Source: Epiperipatus broadwayi (Eukaryota; Animalia; Onychophora). Taken from it: a stretch of DNA of 64,000 nt. The stretch's first letter is position 1, and each line of letters opens with the position of its first letter. Positions 23,451 to 55,065 of the stretch are shown in pieces. The notes beneath the pieces were generated by a model. It worked only from the letters and a program-made list of their open reading frames with translations. It was not told the DNA's origin and did not search any database. The stretch covers positions 1,674,001 to 1,738,000 of the forward strand of contig JAQFVV010000003.1 in the NCBI GenBank assembly GCA_028023455.1, given 5' to 3'. Made by a program: the position numbers and the translations under genes.

Positions 23451-24334
23451 TTTTTACTAGGTTTTACTAATTTTGATTTTTGGATCTGAGACTCAGACAC
23501 TTAACAATAGATTAATACAGAAACTTCAGATCACTCATTGATGAATGGAGAATACAGATACATGTTAAAAATAATAAAGATAAAAAGAAACTACATGGAT
23601 AAGTGAAAAAATAAGTATCACTGACATCATTGAAAGAATTAAGATACTGAAATGGACTTGGACTGTACATATTGTAGAAGAGATAATAATAAATGGGTAG
23701 TAGAAGTTTTAAATTGAGTCCAAGAGATTTTAAAATACTAAGAAAGAAACAATATATCAGTTCAATGGATAAAATAAAGAAGCTTGCTGGTTTGATGTGG
23801 AGACGAAAGACTAGGAATCAGAGACACTGGATCAAACTTGGAGAGATCTTCATCTTGTAATGAAACAATAATAGTTGAAAATAATAATGATGACCAAGAT
23901 ATGTCTTTTTGACATAGCTAATAAGCTCTGATTGGCTCATCAACAAATTAATATTAACATAATCAATAAAGAATAGTTTAAAAAAACAAATTAAAAGTTT
24001 TGTGTACATTTAAAATGATAAAAAGCATGATAATCTCATTAATAATAATAAAAAAAACCTTAAATAGTTTGAACTACTGATCAAATCAGTCATAATTTTC
24101 TTTTAATCAAATTATTACCCAAAACAAAATTTTAATTTAGCTTAATGGCATAAATCTTCACTGAGAGAAGGAAGATAGATATTCATAAAAATTTCAAAGA
24201 TAATCAATGAGAAATGTTAAATTAAAAAACTAAAGCAATTTTCATAGCCCAGAGTGAATCTGATGTGCCAATAAAAGACCTGTGCAAAATATTTTGTGTT
24301 TGTGTTTTCAATCAATGAAGATGGAAAAAATACT

Positions 24335-24427
24335 AGTCAGCGCAGCAGCCTTGCAAGCAAGCAGTTGATTGCAGATGGTTGTTGTGGTTCACTTCCTGGC
24401 CAATGCTATGACATATGTAAAAAAAAA
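24335..24427 (+). mobile_element. tRNA-Gly-derived SINE copy (5'-truncated)
   Basis: GCAGCCTTGCAAGCAAG...GGTTCACTTCCTGGCCAATGCTATGACATATG(A)n. Confidence 0.8.
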
Positions 24428-24733
24428 CTATCCTGATTGAATTACTTATACGAATAAGAAATGTTTTGTTTAATGTTGCAAAGACAGGCTTATTCATGAC
24501 CGAGAAGAATACAACATACAATAAATATATATTTATTTTTAAATTTATATTTGTCTTTCACTATAAATGATAAAAAAATGTGTATTTTATAGTAAAAATA
24601 TTTATTTATTTTGACTTCATATTGTTTTTATGCATCTAACATTATTGTAAACTCAATATAGAAAGTGGATAATTACTGTCATATTACTTTTTACCTTAAA
24701 GTTTATTTAATTTCATTACTTTACTATACATAT

Positions 24734-25670
24734 GTAAATAATATTTATTTATAAAGCGCAGACGGTATTGAAATTAAACTGAGAGACTGCAAACCTCTCA
24801 AGTGCTTCTAACTATCAACAACCAATCAAGATCATAAACACCGAGACAGAGAATTTAACAAGAAAAGGGTGGTTCCACCCTCTTCTTTACTTGTCTTTCT
24901 ATATATCCAAGACAGTCAAATTACAAACATACAGCATAAAATCTTTCAATTTACTATGCAGTAGTTTTTTGATGTTATAACTTGCAGCAATATATGAAAA
25001 TAATATTTATTTTATAAAGCACAGATGGTATTGAAATTAAACTGAGAGACTACAAACCTCTCAAGCGCTTCTAACTATCAACAGTCAATCAGATCATAAA
25101 CACTGAGACAGAGAATTTAACAAGAAAAGGGTGGTTCTACCCTCTTCCTTACTTGTCTTTCTATATATCCAAGCCAGTCTAAAGTACTTAGATCTGAAAG
25201 CATAAATCTTAAATATCTTCACACTCAATTCACATACAGTGTGAAATCTTTCGATTTACTATGCAATAGCTTTTCAATGTTATAACTTGCAGCAATATAT
25301 GTAAATAATATTTATTTTATAAGGTGCAGGCAGTATTGAAATTAAACTGAGAGACTGCACTTTATAAAATAAATATTATTTATATATATTGCTGCAAGTT
25401 ATAACATCGAAAAACTACTGCATAGTAAATCGAAAGATTTCAAGCTGTATGTTTGTAATTTGAACTCAGTGAATTGAGTGTGAAGATATTTAAGATTCAC
25501 ACTTTCAGATCTAAGTACTTTAGACTGGCTTGGATATATAGAAAGAAAAGTAAAGAAGAGGGTGGAACCACCCTTTTCTTGTTAAATTCTCTGTCTCAGT
25601 GTTTACGATCTGATTGGCTGTTGATAGTTAGAAGTGCTTGAGAGGTTTGCAGTCTCTCAGTTTAATTTTG
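24734..25670. mobile_element. Tandem-plus-inverted repeat element (PLE pseudo-LTR-like architecture) with 10-bp TSD
   Basis: Units 24734-24995 and 24996-25300, a partial unit 25301-25360, then an inverted unit 25357-25668. CTATACATAT flanks both sides (24724-24733, 25671-25680). Confidence 0.8.
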
Positions 25671-26386
25671 CTATACATATATAAATTTTGTTTATAAATT
25701 CTATTTTTATATTGGACTTTTAGAAAAAATTAACTTTATTTAAATATTCCAAATACATTCTACTGTTAGTAATAACACATCAAACATGTTAGTATATGCA
25801 CAACATTTCAAGAGATATTTTTCTTTCCACTTCTTCAGGTACTGCTGGTCTGACCTGTGACAGTTACTAGCATGGGATTCGAACCTGAGTCTGTAAATTC
25901 TTGATTATTGAATTTTAAGGTAATCCTCTAACCAACTGGGCCATCCTGCCAAAGGCAACAGTCAGTAAAAATTTCATATACTTATCCATGAGGTTCCTCT
26001 TGATTTCTCCACTTTTTTCTAAGAGCAAAATTAATTAGTGTTTTCCATACATTATGTATAGTCACACTAAGTTGGCTTATGGGATTTTTTGCCATTGTAA
26101 TGTGAGCAGCTTCTTTAAATTTTCTTTTTTGTACCCTTTCTTCTCTATCCAATATTTTGTATTTTCCGAATTGAAACAAAAATATTAGATAGAAAAGAAA
26201 GGGTACAAAGAAGAAAATTTAAACAAGCTGCTCACATGACAATAGCAAAAAATCCCAAAAGCCAACCTAGTGTGACTATACATAATGTATGGAGACCACT
26301 AATTAACTTTGCTCTTAGGAAAAAGTGGAGAAATCAGAAGGAACCTCATAGATAAATATATGAAATTTCTATTGACTGTTGCTTTT

Positions 26387-26478
26387 GACAGGATGGCTCA
26401 GTTGGTTAAAGCATTATTTTAAAATTCAATAATCAAGAATCTAAGAACCCAGGTTCGAATCCCATGCTAGTACTATCA
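26387..26478 (+). ncRNA. tRNA-like module inside the PLE terminal repeat (inverted partner 25858-25950)
   Basis: A box TGGCTCAGTTGGTTAAAGC, B box GGTTCGAATCCC, GACAG...CT(G/A)TCA ends, and an AT-rich segment of about 35 nt replacing the anticodon arm. Not a functional tRNA. Confidence 0.7.
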
Positions 26479-26493
26479 CTGGTGAGGCCAGCA

Positions 26494-26538
26494 ACACTTG
26501 AAGAAGAGGGGAGAATAATACCTCTTGAAATGTTATGC
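26494..26538 (+). ncRNA. Decayed minimal type I hammerhead ribozyme (inverted partner 25798-25843)
   Basis: ACAC-TTGAAGA-A-GAGG...CCTCTT-GAAA-TGTT-ATGC; the partner retains CTGAAGA. Confidence 0.6.
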
Positions 26539-27649
26539 ATATACTAACCTGTTTGGTGTACTATTATTAACAGTTGAATATGTTTGGAATATTTAAATAA
26601 AGTTACATTTTTCTAAAGACATTCAATACACATATTAGATGATGGAAAGAGACCAATATAAAAATACAACTAGAACTACAAACCTTCAGGAAAATTGCTT
26701 ATAAATATTTATATAATTTTATTATTGAAATATATTAATTAATTAGATATGAATTATTGATGAAATATCATTATGCTAATAAAATATTATATGTATTAAA
26801 AATTTCTAAACTATCATGTTATTATGTATATTTTTGAGGCAATGGAAATAAGTTTGCTGTTAATTGAAAACAGATGACATCTTAAAGAAACTGAGCAGGA
26901 TAAAATCCTAATGTGCACTCCATACATTATTGTCATTGCAGCTGTTATAACTATTATTCTTATGATGAATAACATGGATGGATTGTTTACTAACATGCAT
27001 TAGACAGCATAGTGAATTTAGTAGCATTTTCCCTCTGAGTTTAAGACTATTAAATATCATAACTTTTTTTTTTAATTATTTGATAGTTTTTAACTGTAAC
27101 ATCCAGTTGAGTTTTTTTAAGGTAGGCTGAAATGTATATGTGGTAATAATCAATTATAGATATTTTCGTTTGTGATAGACAAAATTAAATTATGGCTTTT
27201 ATTTTTACACAACTGTAAATCATCATCTAAAAAAGTAGTTGGCAATAAAAGCCAGAGGATGCTAAAGATCATTGATTGCAGACTCTGATTGCCATTTGAC
27301 ATAACTTTAGCTTTAGCTACTTACAATTGCAAAGCAACTTTAAATAAAAAGAACTAAATCCAAATAGTGATTTAATTATTTTTAACCAGAGAGTAAAGAA
27401 AAAATATATAATTAACGGACAGTGATACTCAGAACTGAGAATGGCCATTCTAAGTCCAAAAAGAAAATAAAGAAGAAAAAGAGGGAAAATTTTTCTCTTG
27501 AAATAAGTTAAGCAATGATTATTTAAACTAATTGATGAAACACCAATACATCCATGTATATAACATAGTTGTCCATTTTTATTTACATAATACTATGATG
27601 TTTTATTTTTATTTTTTTCTACTTCAATATCAGGTCTGATTACTGCTCT

Positions 27650-27875
27650 TTATTGCATTCTACTAGAAGAGATGATAATAGATGGACAAGTGAAATCTTA
27701 AACTGGATTCCAAGAGATTATAAAAGACCCAGAAAGAGACCACATGTGAGATGGATGGATGAAATAAGAAAATGTGCAGGAGTGATGTGGAGAAGAAAAT
27801 CTAAGGATCAGAGAAGATGGATTGAACTTGGAGAGATCTTCATCTTGCAATGGATTGAGAATGGTTGATGATGAC
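27650..27875 (+). mobile_element. RTE LINE 3'-terminal fragment
   Basis: RRDDNRWTSEILNWIPRDYKRPRKRPHVRWMDEIRKCAGVMWRR...LGEIFILQWIENG* followed by (GAT)n; same family as 23650-23890. Confidence 0.85.
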
Positions 27876-27889
27876 TCTCTGCCCTATCT

Positions 27890-30800
27890 TTTCAGAGGAA
27901 ACAGTTAACATTGCATTTCTACAGAGTGTCTTTGAGATAATTCTTATAATGTAGATGGTATTTATCTCTCCCATTAAAACAATGCTAAAGTTTACCATAA
28001 AACACATTTAAAAAAGTTCTGCACTGTTTCTTCATTTTAAATATACAGTTTAAAGAAGGTTTGATTTCACAGTAATGGATACAATAGTATTGCGTCTGGC
28101 AAGTCAAAGATCATACTGATTGTCTTTATGATTTTGCCATTGTATTTTTAAAATTTTATAAAGCATCTCTTAAATGAAACCTTTCTAATTCCTTTATATT
28201 TGCTGAATGGTAAAATAACACTTTTTATATACTGCTAAGTTAGTTGCATCAATTAGTTCCCTGTAATAAAAAATCTTTCTTTTAACTTTCTAAAATCAAT
28301 AACATAACATTGAACTTTGGATTATACCTCATCATCTAATTCACCATTCTACTTATAAAACTACCAGGGTATTTAAACTGGTTTACATTCTCAGGTTGTA
28401 ACCATCCAAGCACAAAGTTGCTGAGAGTTTTCTTCCAACACTGCTTGATAAAAATTGTGTTTTTAAACATTAATTAATAAAACACACTTTATATATTGCA
28501 TTTAAAATATCAAGAATTTTATGTAAATTGTCTTTTGAACTGGCAAAAATGGCACAATTATAAGCATACTGTAATTGCAAAATTCAGAAGTTTTTGTTTT
28601 TACTTATAAGTGATTCAAATAAAAAATTCCACCAGCAAATTTGTATTGTAATTTGATCTCTGATCAATTAAGCCTCTTATAAATATTCCAAAGACAAAAA
28701 ATTGAAAGCAGTGTTTTGAAGCAAGTATACATCTTTGATTAACATCAGTTTTCATTTTAAATGTATCAGATTTTTCATCTATAGTAATAACACCTTCTCA
28801 TTACATAATGGAAAAGCATCATAATAGAAATACTTATTAGTGGACACCAATAAATTTCAAAACAATCCAACTAATTGAAGCAATGTATAATTTATTTCTT
28901 TTGTTCCTGACACTTTTTTGCATTTGCTTGGTAATAAGAATTATGTGCATGGTGCTTCTGGATTCTCTAAAACCACATAGAATTTATGGCCACCATTTTT
29001 TTTTGACTGAAAGAAATCTATTCAACTAAATTCTTAAAAGTATTTTTCCTGTAGTTACACAATAATTATTGCAATCTTGTTTGGTCCCTTTGTTTATAAA
29101 AATTAAAACAATAAAGACATCCTTAATTTTGGGTGGCACAATTTTATGAGTCCACATATTTTTTAAAAAAGTTCAATATTTTTGAAGCTAGCATATCACC
29201 CCCATATATTGAATTTTCTGAAATTTTGTCAAGATTTGCAGGTTTTCCATTTTTAAAATTATAAAGAACTGTTCTTCAATAAGTTGAATATTTTAGTGTA
29301 AATGAGTAAATAAAATGAATATATCATTAAAAGTTGTAACCTCAATTTTATAAGGAAAATCAAAGTACTCCTTTCACTTGTTCAAAATATCACTGACATC
29401 ATATGAGGAAGTGCCATTGCTCAATTTTCTAAGATTGTATGCCACTTTCAAAGATTTAAAATGACCACAGTCACTTAATGTCTGCATCTTCTTTGCAGTT
29501 TTAATCCATAAACCTTTTTTAAGACTTAGTGTTTGTCATTAAACTTTTGCATTTAAATTTTTATATTATTAAGAACTTTTATTTTTAATCCATTATTCTG
29601 TCAACCAAAAAATGTCACTTTTTTTTAACAAGTAACTATTAATACAATTATTATCAGAATATCAATCTTGATTCTTCTTCTTAGTGAAACCAAAAATAAA
29701 TTTATTTGTATCCATAACACTTTAATATAATTCCAAGCTTCAATAATATGACAGTGTTAAAGATCCAAATTAGTATATGCACAATGTTTTGAGAAGTATT
29801 ATTTTCCCTTCTTCTTCAGATGTTGCTGGCCTGACCAGTGGCAGTACTAGCATGGGATTTAAACCTGGATTCTTAGATTTTTGAGTATTGAAATTTTAAG
29901 ATAAAGTTGTAACTAACTGAGCTATCATGCAAAAAGCAAGTGTCCAGGTTCGAATAATATGTTAGTACTGTCACTGATCAGTCCAGCAACACTTGAAGAT
30001 GAGGAGAGAATAATACCTCTCAAAATGTTGTGCATTTATTAACCTGTTTGATATGCTATTATTAACAGTTGAATGTATTTGGAATATTTAAATAAAGTTA
30101 AATATTTCTAAAGACATTCAATACACATATTAGATGATGGAAATAGTCCAATATAAAAATACAACTAGAATACCATCATCACAAACCTTCAGGAAAATAT
30201 TTGCATGATATTAACTTCTCTTGCTTTCTGCCTCTTAATCATAATATAGATCTATTAAATGCCATTGTTTTGAGCAAGGATGCATCCATGTTTCTTTATC
30301 ATGGTTTTTCTGACTAAAGAAAATATTTGTGATAATCAATTTATGTATAGTGTAAAAATTCAAATCTCAACAAACCATTTGATTGTACATCACCAATATT
30401 ATTGAGTTCTATAACTTTTATCCAAAGTCTACTATTTGTAGTAGCACAAGCTTTAAAGGCTCTAAAAAGAAAAAAAATATTATTTTAATGGTATTACAGT
30501 AATAATGTTATCCAACAGGGAATAAACATTTTCCTTCTCTGAATTCTCTGAATCTAACATTGAAGCATAAGAACTAAAATGATCACTAGTATTATTGTGC
30601 ACATTGAGTTTTAATTGATACAATAAGAAATTCTAACAATAGAGATATGACTTTATCCTTTACAGCAATCTAACATCATGCATTCCTATTTCACTGATTG
30701 CCCTGGCTTTCCAAAAAAACTTGGATAAGTACATCTGTTCTACTAAACATTTTTTTTTCTGGGAAAAGAATTTTATTAAAAGTACCTACATTGATCTTAA

Positions 30801-30900
30801 ATTTTGAGAAATTTCTATCACTAATGCAATGCTATGTTCTAGTTTTGAAGAATTTATATCAATAAAATTTGCACATTTAATATATCTATATTTAGAAAAA
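27890..30900 (-). mobile_element. Decayed RTE-type LINE (APE about 30300-30900, RT about 27900-29700) interrupted by a PLE fold-back
   Basis: Minus-strand fragments resembling QCGFR..RST, LQYA(DD)CA, F.YLGS.IS...LDDEV and the APE pattern SAYAP.LDSE.EKE.F. Confidence 0.65.
29770..30192. mobile_element. Asymmetric fold-back copy of the tRNA-like/hammerhead PLE module
   Basis: Minus arm 29770-29940; plus arm 29944-30192 starts at the T-arm CCAGGTTCGAAT and ends ACAAACCTTCAG as at 26690. Hammerhead motifs at about 29778-29824 (-) and 29988-30033 (+). Confidence 0.85.
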
Positions 30901-33621
30901 AATTAGAATTATAATATTATCTTTAGTAATACTACTGCTGCCTGCTTTACCACTATTCCTGATATTATTAATTATTATTTCTACCACTGTATGAGTAATC
31001 CAACAGGCATGATAGTCTAACCAGATTGTGTGAGACAGACCACTTTTAGATCACATTGTCTCTGCTCTTTCATTTCTATGGTGGAAGGGGGATTTTCTTT
31101 TCCAGCTAAAACTCCTGTCTCACTAAAATTTAATTCCAAACAATAATTGCATTGGTTCAAGCAGGGTTTCTAGTCTACTAAACCTGTCTGCATCATTGCT
31201 TTCTTAAATCTTGAGAGCTTGAGCTAAAAAAATATTGAAGTCAGAATGCTAAGAATGTAGTTAAAAGATGAAAATATTGTTGCAAAAGCTATCCCATTGT
31301 CGCAATAAAGAGATGTCCAATATCTTAAACAGCTCTTGATTTCTAGACCTTATAATAACTTGACTGAAGAAGGAAAATATAGACTGAAAAATATGTTTAT
31401 ATCAGAAATAGTATCTAGCCTTTGATGAACTAATATCTTATTTCATAACCCAACAGAAGCTAACTTGATCAATCATTCTTTATTTGTTATTTAAGTTAGC
31501 CTTCACATCTAAAAATCATTCCATCATTATGACATTTGTGGAATACATTGAAAGCCTGAACACTGCACCTTACTTACAGTCATTAATCTAATTAGTAATA
31601 TATTCTCTGTTACCACATTTTTATGTATGGAGACTGCATAGACCTTTGGCCCAAAGGGAGGTTTTTATATATCAAATACATAAAATTTGTATTAAATACT
31701 GAAAAGTGATACTAACACTATAATATGTATAGTAACTTAATTTAATTATTAAACTTTAACTACCATATAATAATGTTTTATTTTACAAATAATATTGCAT
31801 ATTACATCATTTGTCATTGGCTTTTACATAATTTGTATATACTTACATAATTTATTTTTTAATCATCAAATTATCCACATATTCACATATATTTTTTTAA
31901 ATCACTATAATTGTGCAAAGTAAAAGAAACATGATTAAAATAAAAATATTTATTATAGTTTACTGCAAGCTCTGTAACAAAGGCTTTGCTTATTTATTGA
32001 CATTATGGTGTAGCTTTGTAATTTAATGTGTACTGAAATTCACTTGATTAATTGCTAAGAAAAAGATGGCATTTTTAACCACAGTGGATGCAGTCAGTAT
32101 AAGTACATAATACCACTTAATTTTCAAATGTCTTGATTTTATATTACTTTTTTAACTGAACAGGTGTTCCCTTTTAATATCTTCCTATAGTTGTCCGTAT
32201 TTTGCAAAAAACAAAAAAAAATAGTTTAAATTTAGCTCACAGTAGTTTTAATTTTATATCCCCTATTTTTATTTTAGCAGAATCTCACACCACAAGTAAT
32301 TTAGATTGTAACTAATGACAACAATAATATGTAACAAATTTATTCCATTATACTCATTGATTATAAGAAAGCAATTAACTGATTAGTTGTTAACTGAATC
32401 TAATTAAACAAAAGTAATTTTATTTTATTTTATGGCTATATTTTTTAAATTTTTTTATATAAATAATTTAATATTAAAAAAATCAAATTTGAAATATATG
32501 TAAAACAAATATATTATAAGCAATATTATATACTGATTGTAATTGGATTCTAACCAAACTATATTGCAGCTCTTGTGGGTAAAATTGATGAATGTAAAAT
32601 TATAAAAAAATATGATATCTCATTTACCTGCTATGTGTAGGATTTAGATTGGAATTCAAGTTCCAATCAGAACTTAAAAGACATTTTTTTATAATTGGAT
32701 ATGTTCCTATTATTAGGTAAAGTAGAAAGTCTTATAAATGATTATTGGGGGAGGGGAAGATTGTTTAAAAAAGAGAATTGTAGATAAATGATTCAGTGGG
32801 TATTAAAAAAGTAGATAAAGAAATCTTAATGTTGTCTCATTCACATGAACAAATTGAGTTATTTTAAAAACTTTAGTCAATTGAAAATGAATCTGGAAAT
32901 TATTAGTTCTTGAGACTATGACTTTACCACTGAGTTAAATCATACAGGGTAACATCTTGACATAGAATAAATATCCATCTTTTTCATTAAAGGATTTTTT
33001 TTTCAAATTATAGTGTATTGTAAATACATGGATAATATATTCTACAAAATTAACATAATAAAAGTCGTCAGTTGAAAATTCCATTTATTCTCTTTACTGA
33101 TATCATCCACATAAATCAATTAAGAAATAATTTCTTATACATTCATGATAAATTCTCTTTGTATGTTACCATAAATTTAATCTTTATCAATTTAGTAACA
33201 AAAATATTAACACTGATAAAAATATACTCCATCAAAAAATAAAATAGACATTATGTAAAATGTGAAAGCTCTTCACTTAGTGAAATTTTGACAATACTAA
33301 TAAACATAGCCAGTTAATTTAAATGTCATATGACAAGCATTCAAATAATAGGTTGAACATTTCAATTAATAATAATCAAATACTTAATAGCTTGAAAGGT
33401 TGTGCAATATTTGAACATTAAAATGTTAGTTTGAACTCTGATTGCTCTTGACTCTATTACTCAGAGTGACAGTTTCATTCAGTTAATCATTGTTTTTTTT
33501 TGTTAGAAATAAATATATGACTCTTTAGCTTTTGAGTCATCAGTTTACCATGGTATTAATTCAATATGAGGTTTAAAAAAGCAATGAAACTGCAACAAAG
33601 CATCAAAAAGACTTCATTTAG

Positions 33622-46955: not shown

Positions 46956-49081
46956 CTGCTTGTTGCAACCAAGGGATCTATTAGAACAAGCCATTTCTTT
47001 TATTATAGAATTAAATTTCAAATAAATTTGTAGTTGGCTTCGGTTTTTATTATCTCATTCTTTTTTCAGTTCAAAGAGTTGATAATCCAATTAAAGTGAG
47101 GTATTGATTTAACAAGCATCGACTTTTTAGGAATTAAAAATTGATGTTTTTCCATATGTTAAAAAAAAAAAAAAGAATAAATTTTCAGCAGAATTTAGAC
47201 TCCTTCGTTTAAAACTCGTTTATTTCTGATATACAGTAAATATTTTATTTTTACTTTTTACACATGTAATTTAAATTTTTTTAAATTTATCTGGTTTTTG
47301 AAGAGCAAAATATATCATTAATTAAATATATAAAGAGAGAAAGGAGGTGAAAGAAATGTAAAACCATTTAAAAATAAGTATATACTTGAATTTTTTTAAT
47401 AGTATATGTACATATTTTATATAAGAGAATCATTAAAAATAACTTAATAGAGATAGGAATAGTAAATTAATTTTCTGCGAAAACTAATTTTTTTATATAC
47501 TATGAGTACATTTGATTATTAGACATCGTCATTATGTGGAGATTATATAAATAACATATCTTCTGAATGATCTATCATCTGTTTGGTGAAAAGTAAAGAA
47601 TACAATAATAAAGCAGTCTTTAAGTAATTACTGCTGACCAAAGACTTCGACAACTGCTTTCCCCTTCTCTCACCATCAGTACTAAGTTTGCACTGAAAAA
47701 GAAGTGAGTACACAATAGCTTACCAACTTCATGATACTGATAGATAGCCTTAGTGGTTTTTTATTCTTGTTTTACTTATCTTTGGATGACTATCCAGAAT
47801 GGTATTTTGAAAGAAAAACCCTGAGTTTGTTTAAAATCTCAAAAAATTTACAAATTTTGTACTAGTCTAGATTGAAATCTCAAGCTGTGAATGCAGCAGC
47901 CAGAAATGCCAACTAAGTTTCAGAAAAACATAAAGAAACCTGCATATTAAAGATGTCTTTGCAATTCTTCACAAATGCTAAAGAATTCTAGAGAGGAGAC
48001 ATGATATACTTACCAAGTTAAATAACTTTCATTAACTAAAGTTCTCAATTTCTCTTTCTTTCCTTTTGAGCTAAACAGATAAATATTCATTTTCCAATTG
48101 AGAATTGGATAGATTACTGAGTTAGATAGTAGACCATCTATCAAAACAACTTACTTGAAATAAACCTCATTTTAAACTCCAACTCAATTCAAACTTCAGT
48201 TCAATAATAAAGACATTATTCACTATATCATGAGACCTATCACAAATATAACAAAATATTTTAACAGCAAACCAAATTCTTTTTAAAACTGTTTAGTAAG
48301 CTGTTTGATTATAATTATCAATTTAATGTTTATTAAGACTTGAATGAAAAAGCATGGGCATATATTTAAATATACTAATTTATTTCTCAAAGACAAATTG
48401 AGTAGCTAGATAATAAAGTGTTACAAGTAAGCCATATTGCTTAATTATTATCAGTATAACCTGACATTGCCTAACATTTCTTTAATACAATTTAACTTAG
48501 CATCTTAATATTTAAAACTCCATCATGCATTTTAATAAGCCCTTTACATCATTAAGATTGAAATAGATAGTTTTTGTATGCTGAATACTGTTTTTTTTTT
48601 TTTCAATCAAAAGTTTTTAAAATCAATAAAATTGATTTACACATCAGTTATTAAACTTATATGATTGGTGGTTCAAAAACGATACTGGATTTGATATATA
48701 TATATTCTGTACATTTGTATTAATTGTTGATAAAGATTGTCAATGAAACAATTAAAAGTACTTCCAGTAAAGAATATATTATTTAATTTTGAATACTGTG
48801 TTAAATAAATGTTTGAATTATTAATATGTATATATTGAAAACAGTTACTTTTATTGAAATATTTTATTGAGTAAAATTTATAAAATGGAGAAATTATTTC
48901 AGTTAAATTTGGAAAAAAAAGACATATAAATGGCCTCCATTTTTAGCTTCATGCAGATGAGTCCTTTCTATATTTTCTATATTAATCATTCATAAATTCT
49001 TTATGCTGCAGCAATTTATATGGAAATTGCTCTTGAATAAGTGAAAAAAACATTATTATTTTGAAACAAAACAAGCAAAAT

Positions 49082-49190
49082 ATGTCAGGCATTGGTGGTC
49101 GAGAGGTCAGCGACGGTTACTTTACAAGTAGTTGTTCCAGGTTAGTGGGTTCACTACCCGGCTAATGCTATGACACATGAGGAAAAAAAA
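49082..49190 (+). mobile_element. Near full-length tRNA-Gly-derived SINE copy
   Basis: GCATTGGTGGTCGAGAGG...GGGTTCACTACCCGGCTAATGCTATGACACATG plus an A-tail; imperfect TSD AAAACAAGCAA on both sides. Confidence 0.8.
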
Positions 49191-49605
49191 CAAGCAATAT
49201 AATCCATAAAATAAAATAAAAATAAGGAAAAACATACTGTTAAAAAAATAACTTTATTAAGCAGACACAAGATATTTGTCTGAAGGTTTGTAATGATGGT
49301 ATATTATAAGATGTGATATGTTGGACCATTTCCACCACTTTTTTTTTATGAGTGAATGTTGAATGTATAGAAAATTTTAAACTTTATTTAAACTTTCCAA
49401 ATACAAACAACTTGTTGGTAATATCACACAAATAGACAATACAGGTTAGTAATTACATAATGTTTCAAGTAGTAGTATTCTCCACTCTTCTTCAGGTGTT
49501 GCTAGCCTATATGCACAGTGACAATATTTGCTTAGAAGTTGAAATCTCACCTTTAGATTCTTGTATATTGAATTTAAGGTAAACACTCTACCAACTGAGC
49601 TGCTT

Positions 49606-49696
49606 GACAGAATAGCTCAGTTGGTAGAGCATTTGCCTTAAATTCAATATACAAGAATCTAAAGGTGCGAGTTCAACTTCTAATTGAATATTGTCA
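49606..49696 (+). ncRNA. tRNA-like module (Pol III A box, weak B box)
   Basis: GACAGAATAGCTCAGTTGGTAGAGC...AATCTAAAGGTGCGAGTTCAACTTC...TTGTCA; the D-arm and ATCTAAAGGT resemble tRNA-Phe-type sequence. Confidence 0.7.
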
Positions 49697-49715
49697 CTGC
49701 GAATAAAGGCCAGAA

Positions 49716-49760
49716 ACACCTGAAGAAGAGTGGAGAATAATACTACTCGAAATGTTGTGT
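49716..49760 (+). ncRNA. Minimal type I hammerhead ribozyme, best-preserved copy (inverted partner 49455-49499)
   Basis: ACAC-CTGAAGA-A-GAGTGG(agaataata)CTACTC-GAAA-TGTT-GTGT: intact core, 4-bp stem I, 6-bp stem II. Stem III ATGT (partner ACAT) implies an ancestral palindromic ACGT. Confidence 0.8.
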
Positions 49761-52700
49761 AATTACTAACCTGTATTGTCTATTTGTGGGTTATTACTAA
49801 CAAGTTGTTTGTATTTGGAAAGTTTAAATAAAGTTTAAAATTTTCTATACATTCAACATTCACTCATAAAAAAAAAAATGATGGAAATAGTCCAACATAT
49901 CACATCTTAGACACAAGATAGTTTTTCTTTTATTTGAGAGCATTATACTAATATCTGGATAGCTTTCTGTAGCTTAGCTTAAGGACGTGAAAAGCTGCTA
50001 TAAAACTCTGATGAAAATAATATCTTTTGCAGCTGTCAATTATACTACCAAAACTATAAATTTAATTGCATAAAATATATTTTGGGCACAGTGACAAAAT
50101 TAATTAAATAAGTTGAAGGCCTATATATCTAAAGTGTGTTATTTTAAATGCTATCATTTAATATGACATTATTTCTTTTTAATTCTGAAAGACTTCATCT
50201 TTTACAAATGAGTTTGTTTTAATATATACGATAAATTTTTGCATAATAAGTAAAAACGATATGCTTTAAATTGAACATCAGAACATAAACACTATATTTA
50301 TCTAAAAATATTGATGCATTTTGTTAATTAATTATTATTTATCTTGCATGACTGTCAACAATAATTACACAGGAAAAAAGCATTAATTGATGATTGTGTA
50401 ATAGTGAATCTGCTTTTAATTTAGATCATAGTGAATTCCATGTATTAAATGATTTCTGTGGCCCCCAGATTAGAAATATTAATTTTTTGGTAGGAATTTT
50501 AAGCAACTTTAATATTGTTCACTAGCATTGATGAAGCTATTAAATATAACATCTTTATTTGGGGAAATTGTCTTGGATCTTGTTAGGTATATACAGCTCA
50601 TTGGTTTTTGTCTCTAATCAAAAAGTGTTAATATCAAAATCTTACTTAGTGGACTATTAAAAATAATTAAATTGAGTCTTAAGCTATTGAAAAATTGCAA
50701 TAACAAATCATATGTAAAAATGGTTTCTTTATTTGATCCACATAATTTACAAATTATGTTGAAGAGCTATCTGTGATTTTTATTAAAAAATATTGTAGTT
50801 GGCAAAATATAAAAAAAGATTTGATGCCAGAATAAGTTAATGGTACATTCAGTAATATATTTTCTAATACTACCATAGATGAATGAATTTCCAATTAATG
50901 TCATGATTAAATTTGGGGGTATATTATCATTGATAGGTCACTTAAGCATTTGAACAATATTAGATCTGTTCATCTAATCTTTTGTATCTATCTATGTTAG
51001 CCCCCATCTCACCAAATATGATGTTTTTTTTCCAATTTTACCAAATCAGATGACTGGCAGGAAAATTGATGTCAAACAAAGGATTTATTAGATAGTCTTA
51101 CAAATGCTTAATTTTTATGAATTGACAAATCAATTTAACTTTGACTCATCCAAGACAATTGTTTTTAATTGATGTTCTTAGATTATCATGATAAAAATGT
51201 TGAGCATCTTCCCCATAAATAATTATTTATATTTTTATTAATATATACTATTGTTATATTGATTATACACTTTTAAGGTTCATACTATGACAAAAAGCCT
51301 TGACAATAGAAATAGCTATTTTAATTTTTATTTTCAAGTGGTATTTAATCAGACTGTTAGTTAATAATCTAATCAAAATTTTATTTATTTGCGATTAATT
51401 TATTAATTATTAAATTAATTTTGGTCATTGAAATATATAATAGAATACCAAGGATTTAGAACTGCTGTTCACAATGATGGGATTTTTGTTCTCATTAATA
51501 TTTTCCATGCCAAAAACTCAATTTCAGTTATGATTTATTTATTTATTCTTAACTTTTTAAATCATTTTTCAGTAATAAAAATATTAATAATCTTTTAGTA
51601 TTTATTACATCATCATTTACAAATATGTTCATCATCTCTTCTTCAAGGTTTGGGATTAATGTTTTAGAAAAAAGAGCAATAATCTCTTTTTAGGGGAATC
51701 AAGGTAGATAACAATAAAATAGGGATACAGGAGATTTTGGCCAATGCCTTTTCTAACACTTAAAATATTAGTGAGAGTCTTATAAAGTTTTTTCTTACTA
51801 TTGCTTTATTTTTAATATAATTTATTAGTCCACACTTAAGAATTTGGTTTCCTAAAGTAATAGCAGTAGTGCATATCTATTTTAATTGATAATGAAGTTC
51901 AGCATAGTTAAAGCACTTTTAAAATGCAGGTGTCCTGGACGTCTGATAAACTATTTTGTTACACATGTGTTGCAATTTTATCAATGTAAATATTTCAAAA
52001 TATGTGTGTTTTTTAGGGATAAAATAAATCATAAGCTATAGTTTAATTGTTAAAAATAATTGGAGTTTATTTAACAATATACTAACAAATATTTTAACAT
52101 TCATATCATCAATTATTCTAAATTTGACCTGAGTCGTAAGTAGTCTGATGCTATTAGAATTTTTCATTATTGTAAACAATATTTGTTTGTTAGCCCTATT
52201 CACATACTCAATTGTAACTCAAGCTTGTCAAGTGATTAGTTATCAGAAACTGTATGGATTTTCATAAGTTAAGATATATACTGAAAATTCTAATGTTATT
52301 GCATGTTTTAAATTATCTATTTGTTCAATCACGTTTTCAAAAAAAATATAAATGCATAGTAATTCTAGCTTTTCCAATCAATATCATGATGATGAGTTAC
52401 TATCTAAGTGTAGATATTTGAAATATTTTCAAATTGCATATTTAATTTCACTTCCCAATAGATACAACATTTTTTTTAATGTGTAATTTTTTCTCATATA
52501 ATAAGATCTTGCCTAGGCATATTTCCAGGTATATTTGCTGACTGTACATTGATTTTTTGTGTTCGTTTTTTTTACTATTGTTAACTGATAAAGGAATCTT
52601 TTTATATGGTTGAGGTTTAATGTTTCATAACTGATTTGATTGGTGGACAATAAAAAATTTATAAATTTGTTTATTATATGTATATTTATTGATAGTCTTA

Positions 52701-54689
52701 ATTTCATCAATACTATTTTTTTTTATAAATAGTCAGTCTCTAATTGAATGATCACCAAGAGATTATTATGAGGCGATGGGCCACACTCTGTGATATCCCA
52801 CTTCATCATTTGATGTGTATACGGTTTAGTTTTGGGGGAGACGCTAGATCAAGTGTGGAACTTTTATTTAATTATATTATTTCATGTTAAAAAATGAAAA
52901 AGGGGGAATAGAAGGTTATTCCATGATAAGTAATAAGAGAGAACTTTAAAATGTTAAATTTAAAATGTTGATGGGATTTTGTTTTGAAGGGAGAGACATG
53001 TTGCCCCAAGAAATGATTTTCATAATAATATTTTATATTTATTTCTTTAGATCCCATCTTGGTCAATCTGCTGTAATATAAATATAATCTTATGTGGCTC
53101 AGTACACTTTTCATAATGTAATTTTAAAAGAATGATATTTTTTCAGTATTTGTATTTGCCTCGCCAGAACTCTGCTTGATTGCCTGTTTTGTCCTTTTGA
53201 TTGCTATGTCAGAATTATTTCACGTGATATATTCACTGGCTAAAAATGTAGGTCAGAATATAAAGGACAAAATTGGGAAGACCCGAGGTAAGCTGAGTTT
53301 AGCAAGCCTTGGTGATTCCTGATTTTTTATCTGAAATATCTCGAGATTTGCAAATTTCGCAACGATTCATCTCTATTTCTTTGCATCACTGGAACCGGAC
53401 AGTGGGATTGAGTTCGTGCTGGTTATGTCATTTCAAATGCTGGATATGATTATTTTCTATTTCTCTGACCACGTCATGGTGGGTTGACTATGGTTTGATC
53501 ATATTAGTTTATATTTTATTATCATTAGCATATTTATTTGCCAATATCATGATCCGCTTGCATTCAAGCATGTCATTCTCGTCGAAGCTGTTTCTCAGAA
53601 ACATAATCAAATTATTTTCTCTTTTATAATGATTTTATTTATGTTAAAGTTACCCAAAAAGTAGTACTTTTAAATATTTGGTTTTTTTTCCTCACACATA
53701 CTTAAATTGGCGTCTACAAAGAACTTTAATCTCTCTCTGTTTTAAATTGGCATATAAATTATACCTCTCCCTTACAAGAGGCATAATAAGTTATATGATC
53801 AAAATTGTCTGTTAATAAACAGTTAAATTAATTAGTGAGATATTAAAAAATTATAGATATGCTTTTTATTAAAATATATATATATGAATTTAACCTACCT
53901 GTGGTTTGTTTCTGTTAATTTTACTTTAAAGTTAGCATTTCTATCTAAATATTGTGCTGCTATCTGATGACTCAAGGTCACACACACACACCATTCCTTT
54001 TGAAACTCATGCATCATGTAATTAAACTAAATGCTAGGGTTAAATGTTAGAAATAGTTGAGGCTCATGTTCTACTGCTGTTGACCAGCCGGAGTTGAAAA
54101 AGATTAATTGCTTGCCTTGAAAATGTTGTTAGATTTAAAAGGTGGGTAAACAGGCTAGAATCCATAAATATTCTTGATCTTTGATCTCATATATGGTTGG
54201 ATTCGAGGTATTTTTACCCAGACTATGAATCGTGTTGAATTAACATACAATTTCGACCAGTATCATAGCAATATTAAGCATCAAATATGCTCACATCCTC
54301 ATTCTTTCTTCCTAAGATCAAAAATGGATGTAGTTAGCTTATAAATGAACTCATTAAGATATAGATATAGTAATATTTTTTATTTGAGTAAAATATAAAA
54401 AAATTAGTCACTTGAATGAAATTGCTGTTATCTTCCTGATATTTGTATGCTCAAATCTGTCATGATGACCTGAGCAACTGTTCACCTAACCATATGTATA
54501 TAATATAGATTCACTGATGATAATTATTTCAGCAATCCTAAGTCATACTGAAACTTGAACTAAACAGCAAAATGGTCAACTTTTTTTCCATCACTACAAT
54601 TCAAAAATATGTAAATGGCAGATGGGAATATAACATAAGCTAGACATTTACAGCTCATAACAAATAATTTTCCATTTATGTCCTTAGAA

Positions 54690-55065
54690 AAATTTTGAAC
54701 TTTGTTTAAACCTTCAAATTACATTCAATTATTAGTAATAACACACAGGTTGACATATAACACAACATTTCAAGTAATACTTTTTCTTCAAGTGTTGCTA
54801 TCTTGACCAGTCTCAGTACTAATATGAAAATAAAATCTGGACCTTTAGATTTTTAAATGTTGAATTTTAAGATACAACTTTAATCAACTGAATCATTTTG
54901 CCAAAAGCAACAATCAGTAGAAATTTTATATAACATCTATGATGGACCTCTTAATTTTTCTATTTTTCCCTAAAAGTAAAGTTAATTTCTGGCTTCTAAA
55001 CAATATGTACTATTGTTTTGGGTTGACTTTTGGAGTAATTTGTCATTATCACATCAACAGCTTAG
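54690..55065 (-). mobile_element. Old single-arm copy of the tRNA-like/hammerhead PLE module
   Basis: Colinear with 25740-26110 (GIY-YIG tail, tRNA-like unit, TTGAAGAAAAAGT..TTGAAATGTTGTG) but more diverged. Confidence 0.7.

Follow-up and report, generated by a model that had tools for sequence, protein, structure and literature searches.

A tRNA-headed near-palindrome in an onychophoran genome as a probable head-to-head pair of truncated Penelope-like element ends

Introduction

Canonical EN+ Penelope-like elements (PLEs; Penelope/Poseidon-type), such as those of Drosophila virilis, Adineta vaga (Pen2a_Av) and Anolis (PAc), leave a recognizable footprint. One published PLE shows an inverted pseudo-LTR (pLTR), a 9-bp target-site duplication (TSD) and, on one of the inverted pLTRs, a tail of 31 bp; its pLTR contains 12 amino acids, or 22 with the tail (PMC3846280). 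Another description combines an inverted truncated copy with a tail of 30-40 bp at one of the ends (PMC8557442). For the Anolis PLE, in-vitro work showed cutting and extension of both target strands, with reverse transcription (RT) beginning at two neighbouring internal start sites that account for the tail (PMC11167929).

Other systems resemble parts of this picture. The schistosome Sm-alpha and Sj-alpha elements and the animal ‘non-LTR retrozymes’ are non-coding units of about 335 bp and high copy number, in which a tRNA-derived head carrying Pol III boxes precedes a hammerhead motif; retrozymes have been argued to derive from PLE pLTRs (bioRxiv 10.64898/2026.07.22.740005). tRNA-derived SINEs with a LINE-matched tail are short, carry A and B boxes in a tRNA-like head, and share their 3′ end with an autonomous partner. 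In L1 twin priming, both target strands prime cDNA in one event, the inverted 5′ part lies within one TSD, and the join uses microhomology.

Here we analysed a near-palindrome in a 64,000-nucleotide stretch of the Epiperipatus broadwayi genome (hereafter the window), for which the original prediction was a non-autonomous SINE mobilised by PLE machinery. The features that had seemed odd in it are the published footprint of the PLE class. As in canonical EN+ PLEs, the family to which it belongs has pLTRs made by partial tandems, an inverted 5′-truncated copy at the 5′ side, a short TSD of variable length, a 30-40-nt tail at one end only with two discrete 3′ ends, and a pLTR that includes the first ~11-12 codons, or 22 with the tail. 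Unlike them, the present locus keeps two terminal pieces only, its terminal repeat has a tRNA-derived block, absent from the PLE descriptions examined, and in place of an Rfam-detectable hammerhead there is just a degenerate motif resembling a minimal hammerhead. Sm-alpha, Sj-alpha and the retrozymes differ in being separate non-autonomous families, often in tandem, with active or Rfam-detectable hammerheads, whereas the present unit is still integral to an autonomous element and no separate lineage of it was found. SINEs, likewise, are separate transcription units with a 5′ end and lineage of their own, which we looked for and did not find here. In L1 twin priming the second primer anneals in the same RNA, so that the two segments derive from neighbouring parts of a single copy, whereas both arms here start at the element's own 3′ start sites and form a true palindrome; moreover, the enzyme is of the GIY-YIG type here and APE in L1. 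We consider it very probable (about 0.87) that the feature is the product of one PLE retrotransposition, which left two extremely 5′-truncated 3′-end (pLTR) copies head to head.

A near-palindrome enclosed by a target-site duplication

The exact 12-mer AGACACAAGATA has exactly two copies in the window, at 49263-49274 (left) and 49909-49920 (right), both without strand assignment; 0.01 were expected by chance, and none of 100 shuffles gave two. Between them, positions 49275-49908 form a near-palindrome of 634 bp, bracketed by the perfect repeat as originally described. The inverted arms pair 49307-49601 with 49614-49909 at ~92% complementarity. At each border 1-2 bases are common to TSD and element, so that the true TSD is 10-12 bp; the last 2 nt of the left copy could equally belong to the element end. 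An extra 32 nt between the TSD and the paired part are found in the left arm only, which agrees with the earlier observation of a one-sided tail. No empty site was found in the assembly, where the right flank is unique and the left flank matches an unrelated repeat only.

The arms are ends of an abundant Penelope-like element

The genome has at least 3337 candidate copies, the best ones being 97-99% alike; positions 49686-49800 served as query in one of the genome searches. Family statistics given below come from about 90 loci, which are the best 40 matches of each search and not a random census; long copies were sampled at 25 loci. In other copies the arm sequence continues unbroken, reaching a GIY-YIG ORF upstream and the start of the ORF downstream. 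As reference (ref) we used a natural full unit of 2802 bp, L043:5667-8468, from a locus containing 1.8 tandem units, in which partial tandem copies form pLTRs with the ORF start in the repeat. The ORF at L043:5601-8030 passes the Pfam cut-offs for RVT_1 (E 1.5e-13) as well as for GIY-YIG (E 1e-4). Its ATG is at ref 2737, 66 nt ahead of the unit end, so that the ORF starts inside the terminal repeat.

Each arm corresponds to the last 306 or 329 nt of this 2802-bp RT and GIY-YIG element. The left arm (49275-49601, minus strand) is a 5′-truncated copy of ref 2480-2802, 92% identical to the reference unit by BLAST, with the ‘long’ 3′ end. The right arm (49602-49908, plus strand) covers ref about 2466/2470-2768 and has the ‘short’ 3′ end. 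The tail (49275-49306, minus strand) is the stretch of 32-34 nt between these two alternative 3′ ends (ref about 2769-2802) and holds codons 11-22 of the PLE ORF. The unpaired palindrome centre (49602-49613, plus strand) consists of 12 nt, ref about 2466-2479, which are present in the right arm and absent from the left. The feature had been taken to lack coding sequence, but the outer ends of its arms carry the start of the PLE ORF: the first 10.7 codons (ATG ATG GAA ..., 49878-49908, plus strand, as read in the full-unit translation) on the right, and 22 decayed codons (49275-49338, minus strand) on the left. The arms are 8% diverged, and decay partly obscures the junction.

Judged from its sequence, then, the arm is the terminal repeat, the final 300-335 nt, of a 2802-bp PLE that is young and very abundant; it is no independent SINE. 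As a textbook PLE footprint among thousands in the genome, the locus is therefore not to be counted as a new SINE or fold-back element.

The tRNA-like block and the distribution of 5′ ends

A tRNA-derived block lies at 49606-49685 (plus strand), with a partial mirror copy at about 49530-49601 (minus strand). Its A box is perfect, its B box degenerate. With the Rfam tRNA model (gathering score 29), scores of 18.4 bits (at the locus) and 15.3 bits were obtained, both below threshold, and ARAGORN called no tRNA for the block. Both boxes are kept in four subfamilies that are only about 70% alike, and T-stem pairing is not kept; present and conserved, they make a candidate Pol III promoter. As had been reported, the right arm starts close to the tRNA-like +1 (2-4 nt ahead of the block, within the family hot spot described below) and the left arm stops at the equivalent of the D-arm.

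Among family copies, 114 unique 5′ ends are spread over ref 1-2774, that is, the whole element. Twelve of them (about 11%) fall at ref 2465-2470, positions -7 to -2 relative to the tRNA-like +1, where the local background predicts about 0.6-1.3 ends. A second cluster (13/114) lies at ref 2387-2406, in an A-run ~70 nt further upstream. Pol III initiation had been expected to leave a sharp peak of truncation points at the tRNA +1: the spread contradicts this, and the local pile-up agrees with it. The enrichment is real, yet it concerns a minority of ends, and most copies do not have a discrete, SINE-type 5′ end. A TATA-like motif, TATATAAA, is located 25-36 nt upstream of the hot spot. The hot spot is likely a real RNA 5′ end, probably the transcription start of the pLTR. 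The pile-up fits a transcription start, and not Pol III specifically: because short copies do not constitute a separate lineage and a TATA-like motif lies ~30 nt upstream, Pol III is neither needed nor shown.

Two other causes of the hot spot were considered and rejected. RNase P cleavage at the tRNA +1 does not suit templated ends situated 2-7 nt upstream of +1, and a reverse transcriptase stalled by the tRNA-like structure would stop on the 3′ side of it.

Among rival explanations, the one that survives best, which we nevertheless hold to be improbable, makes the 300-335-nt unit a non-autonomous SINE with its own lineage, whose A and B boxes direct Pol III transcription and which PLE enzymes move in trans. 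It would account for the retention of a perfect A box and a recognizable B box in four subfamilies that lost T-stem pairing, and for the position of the hot spot, which is the usual Pol III start on tRNA-type genes. Two solo copies (L012 and L022) begin at the hot spot, and there is a precedent in schistosome Sm-alpha, tRNA-derived, about 335 bp, hammerhead-bearing and called SINE-like (PMC2770079, PMC8490949). However, autonomous PLE sequence adjoins the unit without a break on either side, some 89% of 5′ ends are outside the hot spot, and many copies run through the block into the ORF. On a 92-copy tree the hot-spot copies form no clade: their 12 rows need 11 changes, shuffled labels are as good in 238 of 500 trials, and short copies are interspersed among long PLE copies. 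A T4 run stands between the hot-spot start and the RT start sites, ~60 nt ahead of the short end, and the position of TATATAAA would suit a PLE mRNA started by Pol II in the ordinary way. Finally, the copies end at the RT start sites and are therefore probably without downstream template-recognition sequence; in the sole PLE studied in vitro, the template must reach well beyond these sites (PMC11167929). By analogy, the short copies are probably dead-on-arrival by-products of the PLE and not a self-propagating SINE, and this part of the original prediction is not supported.

A hammerhead-like motif follows the block at 49716-49759 (plus strand), with a mirror copy at about 49456-49499 (minus strand). 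It consists of CUGAAGA, one extra A, a 6-bp helix and GAAA(C/U)GUU. This stretch (CUGAAGA ... GAAACGUU) is the most conserved between subfamilies and shows one compensatory helix pair. Neither the locus nor subfamily B (24000-31500) nor a young copy gave an Rfam hammerhead match at E values of 10 or less, and a scan of the whole window at gathering thresholds gave no match; E-value scans returned miRNA-hairpin matches, which are spurious and due to the palindrome. The 114 5′ ends do not cluster at the predicted hammerhead cleavage site (ref about 2622/2623).

Dimers pair a long with a short 3′ end

We found 49 head-to-head pairs of adjacent copies, 2 tandem and no tail-to-tail pair at the about 90 loci. 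The median HSP overlap at the dimer junctions is 2 nt. Of 24 dimers, 16 are enclosed by an exact TSD of 9-15 bp (median 12), compared with 1.8% of shifted controls, and a 13-bp TSD was found around a 6.4-kb complex of inverted and tandem copies. Both the strict orientation and the TSDs around whole dimers argue for insertion of the dimer as one event, as originally proposed, and the attribution of the dimer to PLE machinery is supported as well. Sampled loci with solo copies showed no TSD, for which messy 5′ joining is the only explanation we can offer.

The 3′ ends are bimodal (40 short ones at ref 2764-2779 and 42 long ones at ref 2796-2802, with peaks 33 nt apart), and each of the 21 classifiable dimers combines a long with a short end (binomial p about 1e-6). 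This was not to be predicted from the Anolis PLE, which has no strand preference between its two RT start sites in vitro (PMC11167929). The tailed arm is the more truncated one in 15 of 20 dimers. Within dimers, the 5′ end of one arm correlates with that of the other (rho 0.47, p 6e-4), and the two differ by 15 nt or less in 12 of 49 pairs. The two arms also have non-CpG subfamily alleles in common, with 1.17 mismatches versus 2.43 in random pairs (0 of 2000 draws were so low), and differ mostly by CpG decay and private changes. An origin of the arms from two different RNAs, entertained for instance for L016/L066, was dropped, the ‘common’ differences being CpG sites and the non-CpG subfamily alleles being common to both arms.

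How might such dimers form? By analogy with the Anolis PLE in vitro, a dimeric RT/endonuclease would make staggered cuts, about 10-15 bp apart, in the two target strands. Each 3′-OH would then prime reverse transcription at one of the two internal start sites, 33 nt apart and just inside the ORF, and the two growing cDNAs would be joined at their 3′ ends through a few bases of microhomology. We hypothesize in addition that a single RNA would serve as template for both cDNAs, with the second polymerase following behind the first. Such a model would give a long and a short end in every dimer, a tailed arm that is usually more truncated, and common subfamily alleles. Five of the 20 dimers go the opposite way with respect to truncation. 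That a single event took place is deduced from the TSD and the family statistics.

Slightly less probable than the SINE explanation is snap-back self-priming, whereby one cDNA would have folded back and copied itself into the second arm, a process discussed for the palindromic junctions of rotifer PLEs (PMC3846280). The similar 5′ ends of the arms, the junction overlaps of 1-4 nt and the common subfamily alleles are all compatible with it. Nevertheless, it would give the same 3′ end on both arms, not the long and short ends observed, and an inverted flank instead of direct TSDs; it also needs the tailed arm to reach further 5′, the reverse of what most dimers show.

Two independent insertions, the later copy landing beside the 5′ end of the older one by chance or homing, are very unlikely. 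The Anolis PLE does also cut in its own pLTR junction in vitro (PMC11167929), and the divergence between the arms would be accommodated, but the 12-bp TSD encloses the pair and neither arm alone, and the 49:0 excess of head-to-head over tail-to-tail neighbours, the strict pairing of ends and the shared non-CpG haplotype all speak against two events. Transposase-driven movement at the DNA level, as in a fold-back element or MITE with terminal inverted repeats, is scarcely credible despite the long inverted arms, the flanking direct repeat and the lack of a long ORF, as the arms are a retroelement 3′ end, their outer ends match the two RT start sites, TSD length varies (9-15 bp), and the inner ends differ from copy to copy.

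Implications for Penelope-like elements and SINE-like derivatives

Under the reading preferred here, one PLE retrotransposition leaving two truncated ends, the strict pairing of a tailed with an untailed arm (21/21) and the correlated arm lengths provide a quantitative constraint on the still unsolved integration mechanism of PLEs.

The conserved tRNA-derived block in a PLE terminal repeat, with its hot spot of 5′ ends, bears on the origin of tRNA-headed, hammerhead-bearing SINE-like elements and retrozymes. Such a block was not described as part of a PLE in the PLE papers examined, including PMC4209133 and PMC3846280, from which the word ‘tRNA’ is absent; PMC8557442 mentions tRNA once, for selenocysteine recoding. 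A more far-reaching version, to which we give only tentative credence, is that the block has long been kept in the pLTR, that the hot spot would be the start of a sub-genomic RNA of ~300-335 nt (a ‘built-in SINE’ with tRNA head, minimal hammerhead and RT entry site), and that the two polymerases of the dimer would copy one RNA in tandem. If so, the locus would represent an intermediate stage in the origin of Sm-alpha-type SINE-like elements and retrozymes from PLE ends. Elsewhere in the window, at 25721-26660, 29770-30155 and 54689-54867, diverged copies keep the same module order, in line with the original view of the palindrome as a diverged subfamily of unchanged module order.

An inverted dimer of the 3' end of a Penelope-like element

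The locus (window 49263-49920) is delimited by an exact direct 12-mer, AGACACAAGATA, at 49263-49274 and 49909-49920, found exactly twice in the window (0.01 expected). The 634 bp between the two copies are near-palindromic: the arms (49307-49601, minus strand, and 49614-49909, plus strand) are about 92% complementary around a 12-nt centre, and 32 extra bases (49275-49306), present in the left arm only, adjoin the target-site duplication (TSD). A tRNA-like block begins a few bases inside the right-arm start; its Rfam tRNA score is 18.4 bits, below the 29-bit threshold, and ARAGORN made no tRNA call on it. The original prediction's description of the sequence (12-mer TSD, near-palindrome, one-sided tail, tRNA-adjacent start) is confirmed.

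In the 5.6-Gb assembly (26% G+C), the right arm has at least 1570 matches, the best at 92-94%. Inspection of the sequence past the apparent 5' ends revealed that the "gaps" separating head-to-head copies are mutually homologous, and that the longer ones enter an ORF bearing motifs that precede the GIY-YIG domain. A search with this upstream part returned at least 3337 candidates, the best 97-99% alike, frequently as tandem or head-to-head pairs. One fetched locus, L043, comprises a truncated copy in inverse orientation and, after it, 1.8 units of 2802 bp in tandem, of which L043:5667-8468 serves as reference (ref 1-2802). The ORF of this unit encodes RVT_1 (E 1.5e-13) and GIY-YIG (E 1e-4) domains, and the association of a reverse transcriptase (RT) with GIY-YIG in a single ORF is the hallmark of Penelope-like elements (PLEs). 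The left arm corresponds to ref 2480-2802 and the right arm to about ref 2466/2470-2768; as the start codon lies at ref 2737, the final 66 nt of the "arm" are the first 22 ORF codons. The arms are therefore the 3' end of an RT and GIY-YIG element, which supports the proposal that the sequence was mobilised by a PLE.

At L043:2100-8468 (G000 contig C45), one 13-bp TSD encloses a 6.4-kb complex: an inverted, truncated copy of 1.3 kb precedes a truncated copy of 2.2 kb, which stands in perfect tandem register with a full unit of 2.8 kb. A single event can therefore bring in more than one unit's length of sequence.

The module order proposed to persist in a diverged subfamily was borne out, being identical in the four subfamilies present in the window. 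The fold-back at 25700-26690, from a diverged PLE subfamily, likewise extends into the ORF end: its arms hold the last ~59 codons of the GIY-YIG ORF (protein 74% identical to that of the young family), then a tRNA-like block whose B box is canonical (GGTTCGAATCC), a hammerhead-like motif and the start of the ORF. The terminal module is also present in diverged form at 29770-30155 and 54689-54867, as one head-to-head pair and one solo copy, about 67-75% identical to the arm of the locus.

Pairing of long and short 3' ends

Family statistics were drawn from about 90 loci in four differently anchored samples, each made of the 40 best-scoring matches of its search, with end positions taken from BLAST and accurate to about 2 nt. 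The 3' ends cluster sharply at two places, with 40 at ref 2764-2779 (short) and 42 at ref 2796-2802 (long), and the 33 nt between them are the tail of the original prediction. Among neighbours no more than 100 nt apart, 49 were head-to-head, none tail-to-tail and 2 tandem-like, and head-to-head junctions typically overlap by 1-4 nt. For the 24 dimers with both outer ends visible, exact direct repeats of 9-15 bp (median 12) abut both ends in 16, against 1.8% of shifted controls. Both results support insertion of the dimer as a single event. No TSD was found for solo copies in these samples, and the assembly holds no empty site.

In all 21 classifiable dimers, as in the L043 complex, a long 3' end is paired with a short one (for the 21 dimers, p about 1e-6 under independence of the ends). 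The PLE literature places the tail "often at one end", whereas in this Epiperipatus broadwayi family the rule looks strict. In 15 of 20 dimers, it is the tailed arm that has lost more of its 5' part. The 5' ends of paired arms are correlated (rho 0.47), differing by 15 nt or less in 12 of 49 pairs. Paired arms also agree in non-CpG subfamily alleles much more than arms paired at random, and differ chiefly by CpG decay and private changes; at the locus itself, the arms differ at 23 of 288 positions and carry the same non-CpG haplotype. In the alignment of 92 copies over ref 2480-2768, CpG decaying to TpG/CpA accounts for 8 of the 13 common polymorphic columns, a substitution pattern which suggests present or past cytosine methylation of the elements in the germ line.

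5' ends and the question of a SINE

The sequence had also been read as a Pol III-driven SINE, whose truncation points should peak at the tRNA-like +1 (ref 2472). The 114 unique, uncensored 5' ends gave a mixed answer. A local pile-up does exist at ref 2465-2470 (-7 to -2 relative to this position), with 12 ends where the local background predicts about 1; the downstream-anchored sample alone places 5 of ~45 ends there. Otherwise, ends are spread from ref 1 to ref 2774, with another pile-up of 13 at an A-run (ref 2387-2406). Many copies do not stop at the tRNA-like block but continue into the ORF, and of 26 copies exceeding one unit in length, 11 begin farther upstream than the preceding terminal repeat. 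As the right arm of the locus falls in the ref 2465-2470 pile-up, a defined RNA 5' end there is likely. Pol III is not required for it: TATATAAA lies upstream (ref 2434-2441), a T4 run separates this start from the RT start sites, and this place could simply be where the PLE's own mRNA starts. Moreover, in a tree of the 92 copies (ref 2480-2768), hot-spot starters are intermixed with shorter copies and with long copies of the PLE, hot-spot labels clustering no more than shuffled ones, so that no separate SINE lineage was found. The Pol III-driven SINE is therefore unsupported.

PLE terminal repeats have been proposed to have antisense promoter activity. On the opposite strand, L043:8078-8098 (ref about 2412-2432), which lies some 40 nt upstream of the tRNA-like block, contains a T-arm or B-box-like stretch, GGTTCAAATCC, within a short inverted repeat; this may have arisen by chance or be the remnant of a second tRNA-like sequence, in antisense.

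Comparison with known elements and mechanism

A rotifer PLE has pseudo-LTRs at its boundaries and an inverted pseudo-LTR next to them, a 9-bp TSD, a 31-bp tail on one inverted repeat, and a repeat that includes the first 12 aa of the ORF, a stretch which the tail extends to 22 aa (Arkhipova et al. 2013, PMC3846280). An inverted truncated copy and a tail of 30-40 bp at one end are likewise on record for PLEs (PMC8557442). The Anolis PLE protein, a predicted dimer, cuts and extends both target strands, uses two adjacent internal RT start sites whose spacing equals the tail, and requires RNA downstream of them (Frangieh et al. 2024, PMC11167929). Each feature of the locus is thus a published PLE signature. 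The locus is shown to be a single TSD-bounded unit, in which two PLE 3' ends, one per canonical site, are joined 5'-to-5'.

From in-vitro work, we infer that cDNA synthesis would be primed from both strands of a staggered cut. We hypothesize that both cDNAs may be copied off one RNA, the cDNA from the inner (short) site running ahead and that from the outer (long) site trailing. This would explain why a long end is strictly paired with a short one, why the tailed arm is usually the shorter, why arm lengths are correlated and why the arms have alleles in common; its simplest form is contradicted by 5 of 20 dimers. Copies stop at the RT start sites and so probably carry no downstream recognition sequence; they would then be unable to move again, consistent with the star-like tree.

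Two family-level observations are worth passing on: the strict pairing, and the tRNA-derived block in a PLE terminal repeat. A limited search of four PLE papers found no description of such a block in the terminal repeat of an autonomous PLE, which leaves novelty unproven; the word "tRNA" is absent from PMC4209133 and PMC3846280, and occurs once in PMC8557442, for selenocysteine recoding. Schistosomes have tRNA-derived, hammerhead-bearing SINE-like elements of roughly 335 bp (PMC2770079, PMC8490949), and animal retrozymes have been argued to originate from PLE pseudo-LTRs (bioRxiv 10.64898/2026.07.22.740005).

Rfam hammerhead models gave no match. The stretch most conserved between subfamilies reads CUGAAGA, an extra A, a helix of 6 bp in which one change is compensatory, GAAACGUU, then GUGU, able to pair with ACAC preceding the core. 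By its sequence, this candidate motif is similar to the minimal, dimer-dependent type of hammerhead found in PLEs.

The dimer lies within A-rich DNA, ~70 nt downstream of a separate, very abundant repeat of ~115 nt (49077-49190; at least 2119 candidates, at 88-92%). This repeat, which overlaps an ARAGORN tRNA-Val-like call (49088-49170) and has an A-rich stretch after it, seems a better candidate for a genuine tRNA-derived SINE than the PLE dimer.
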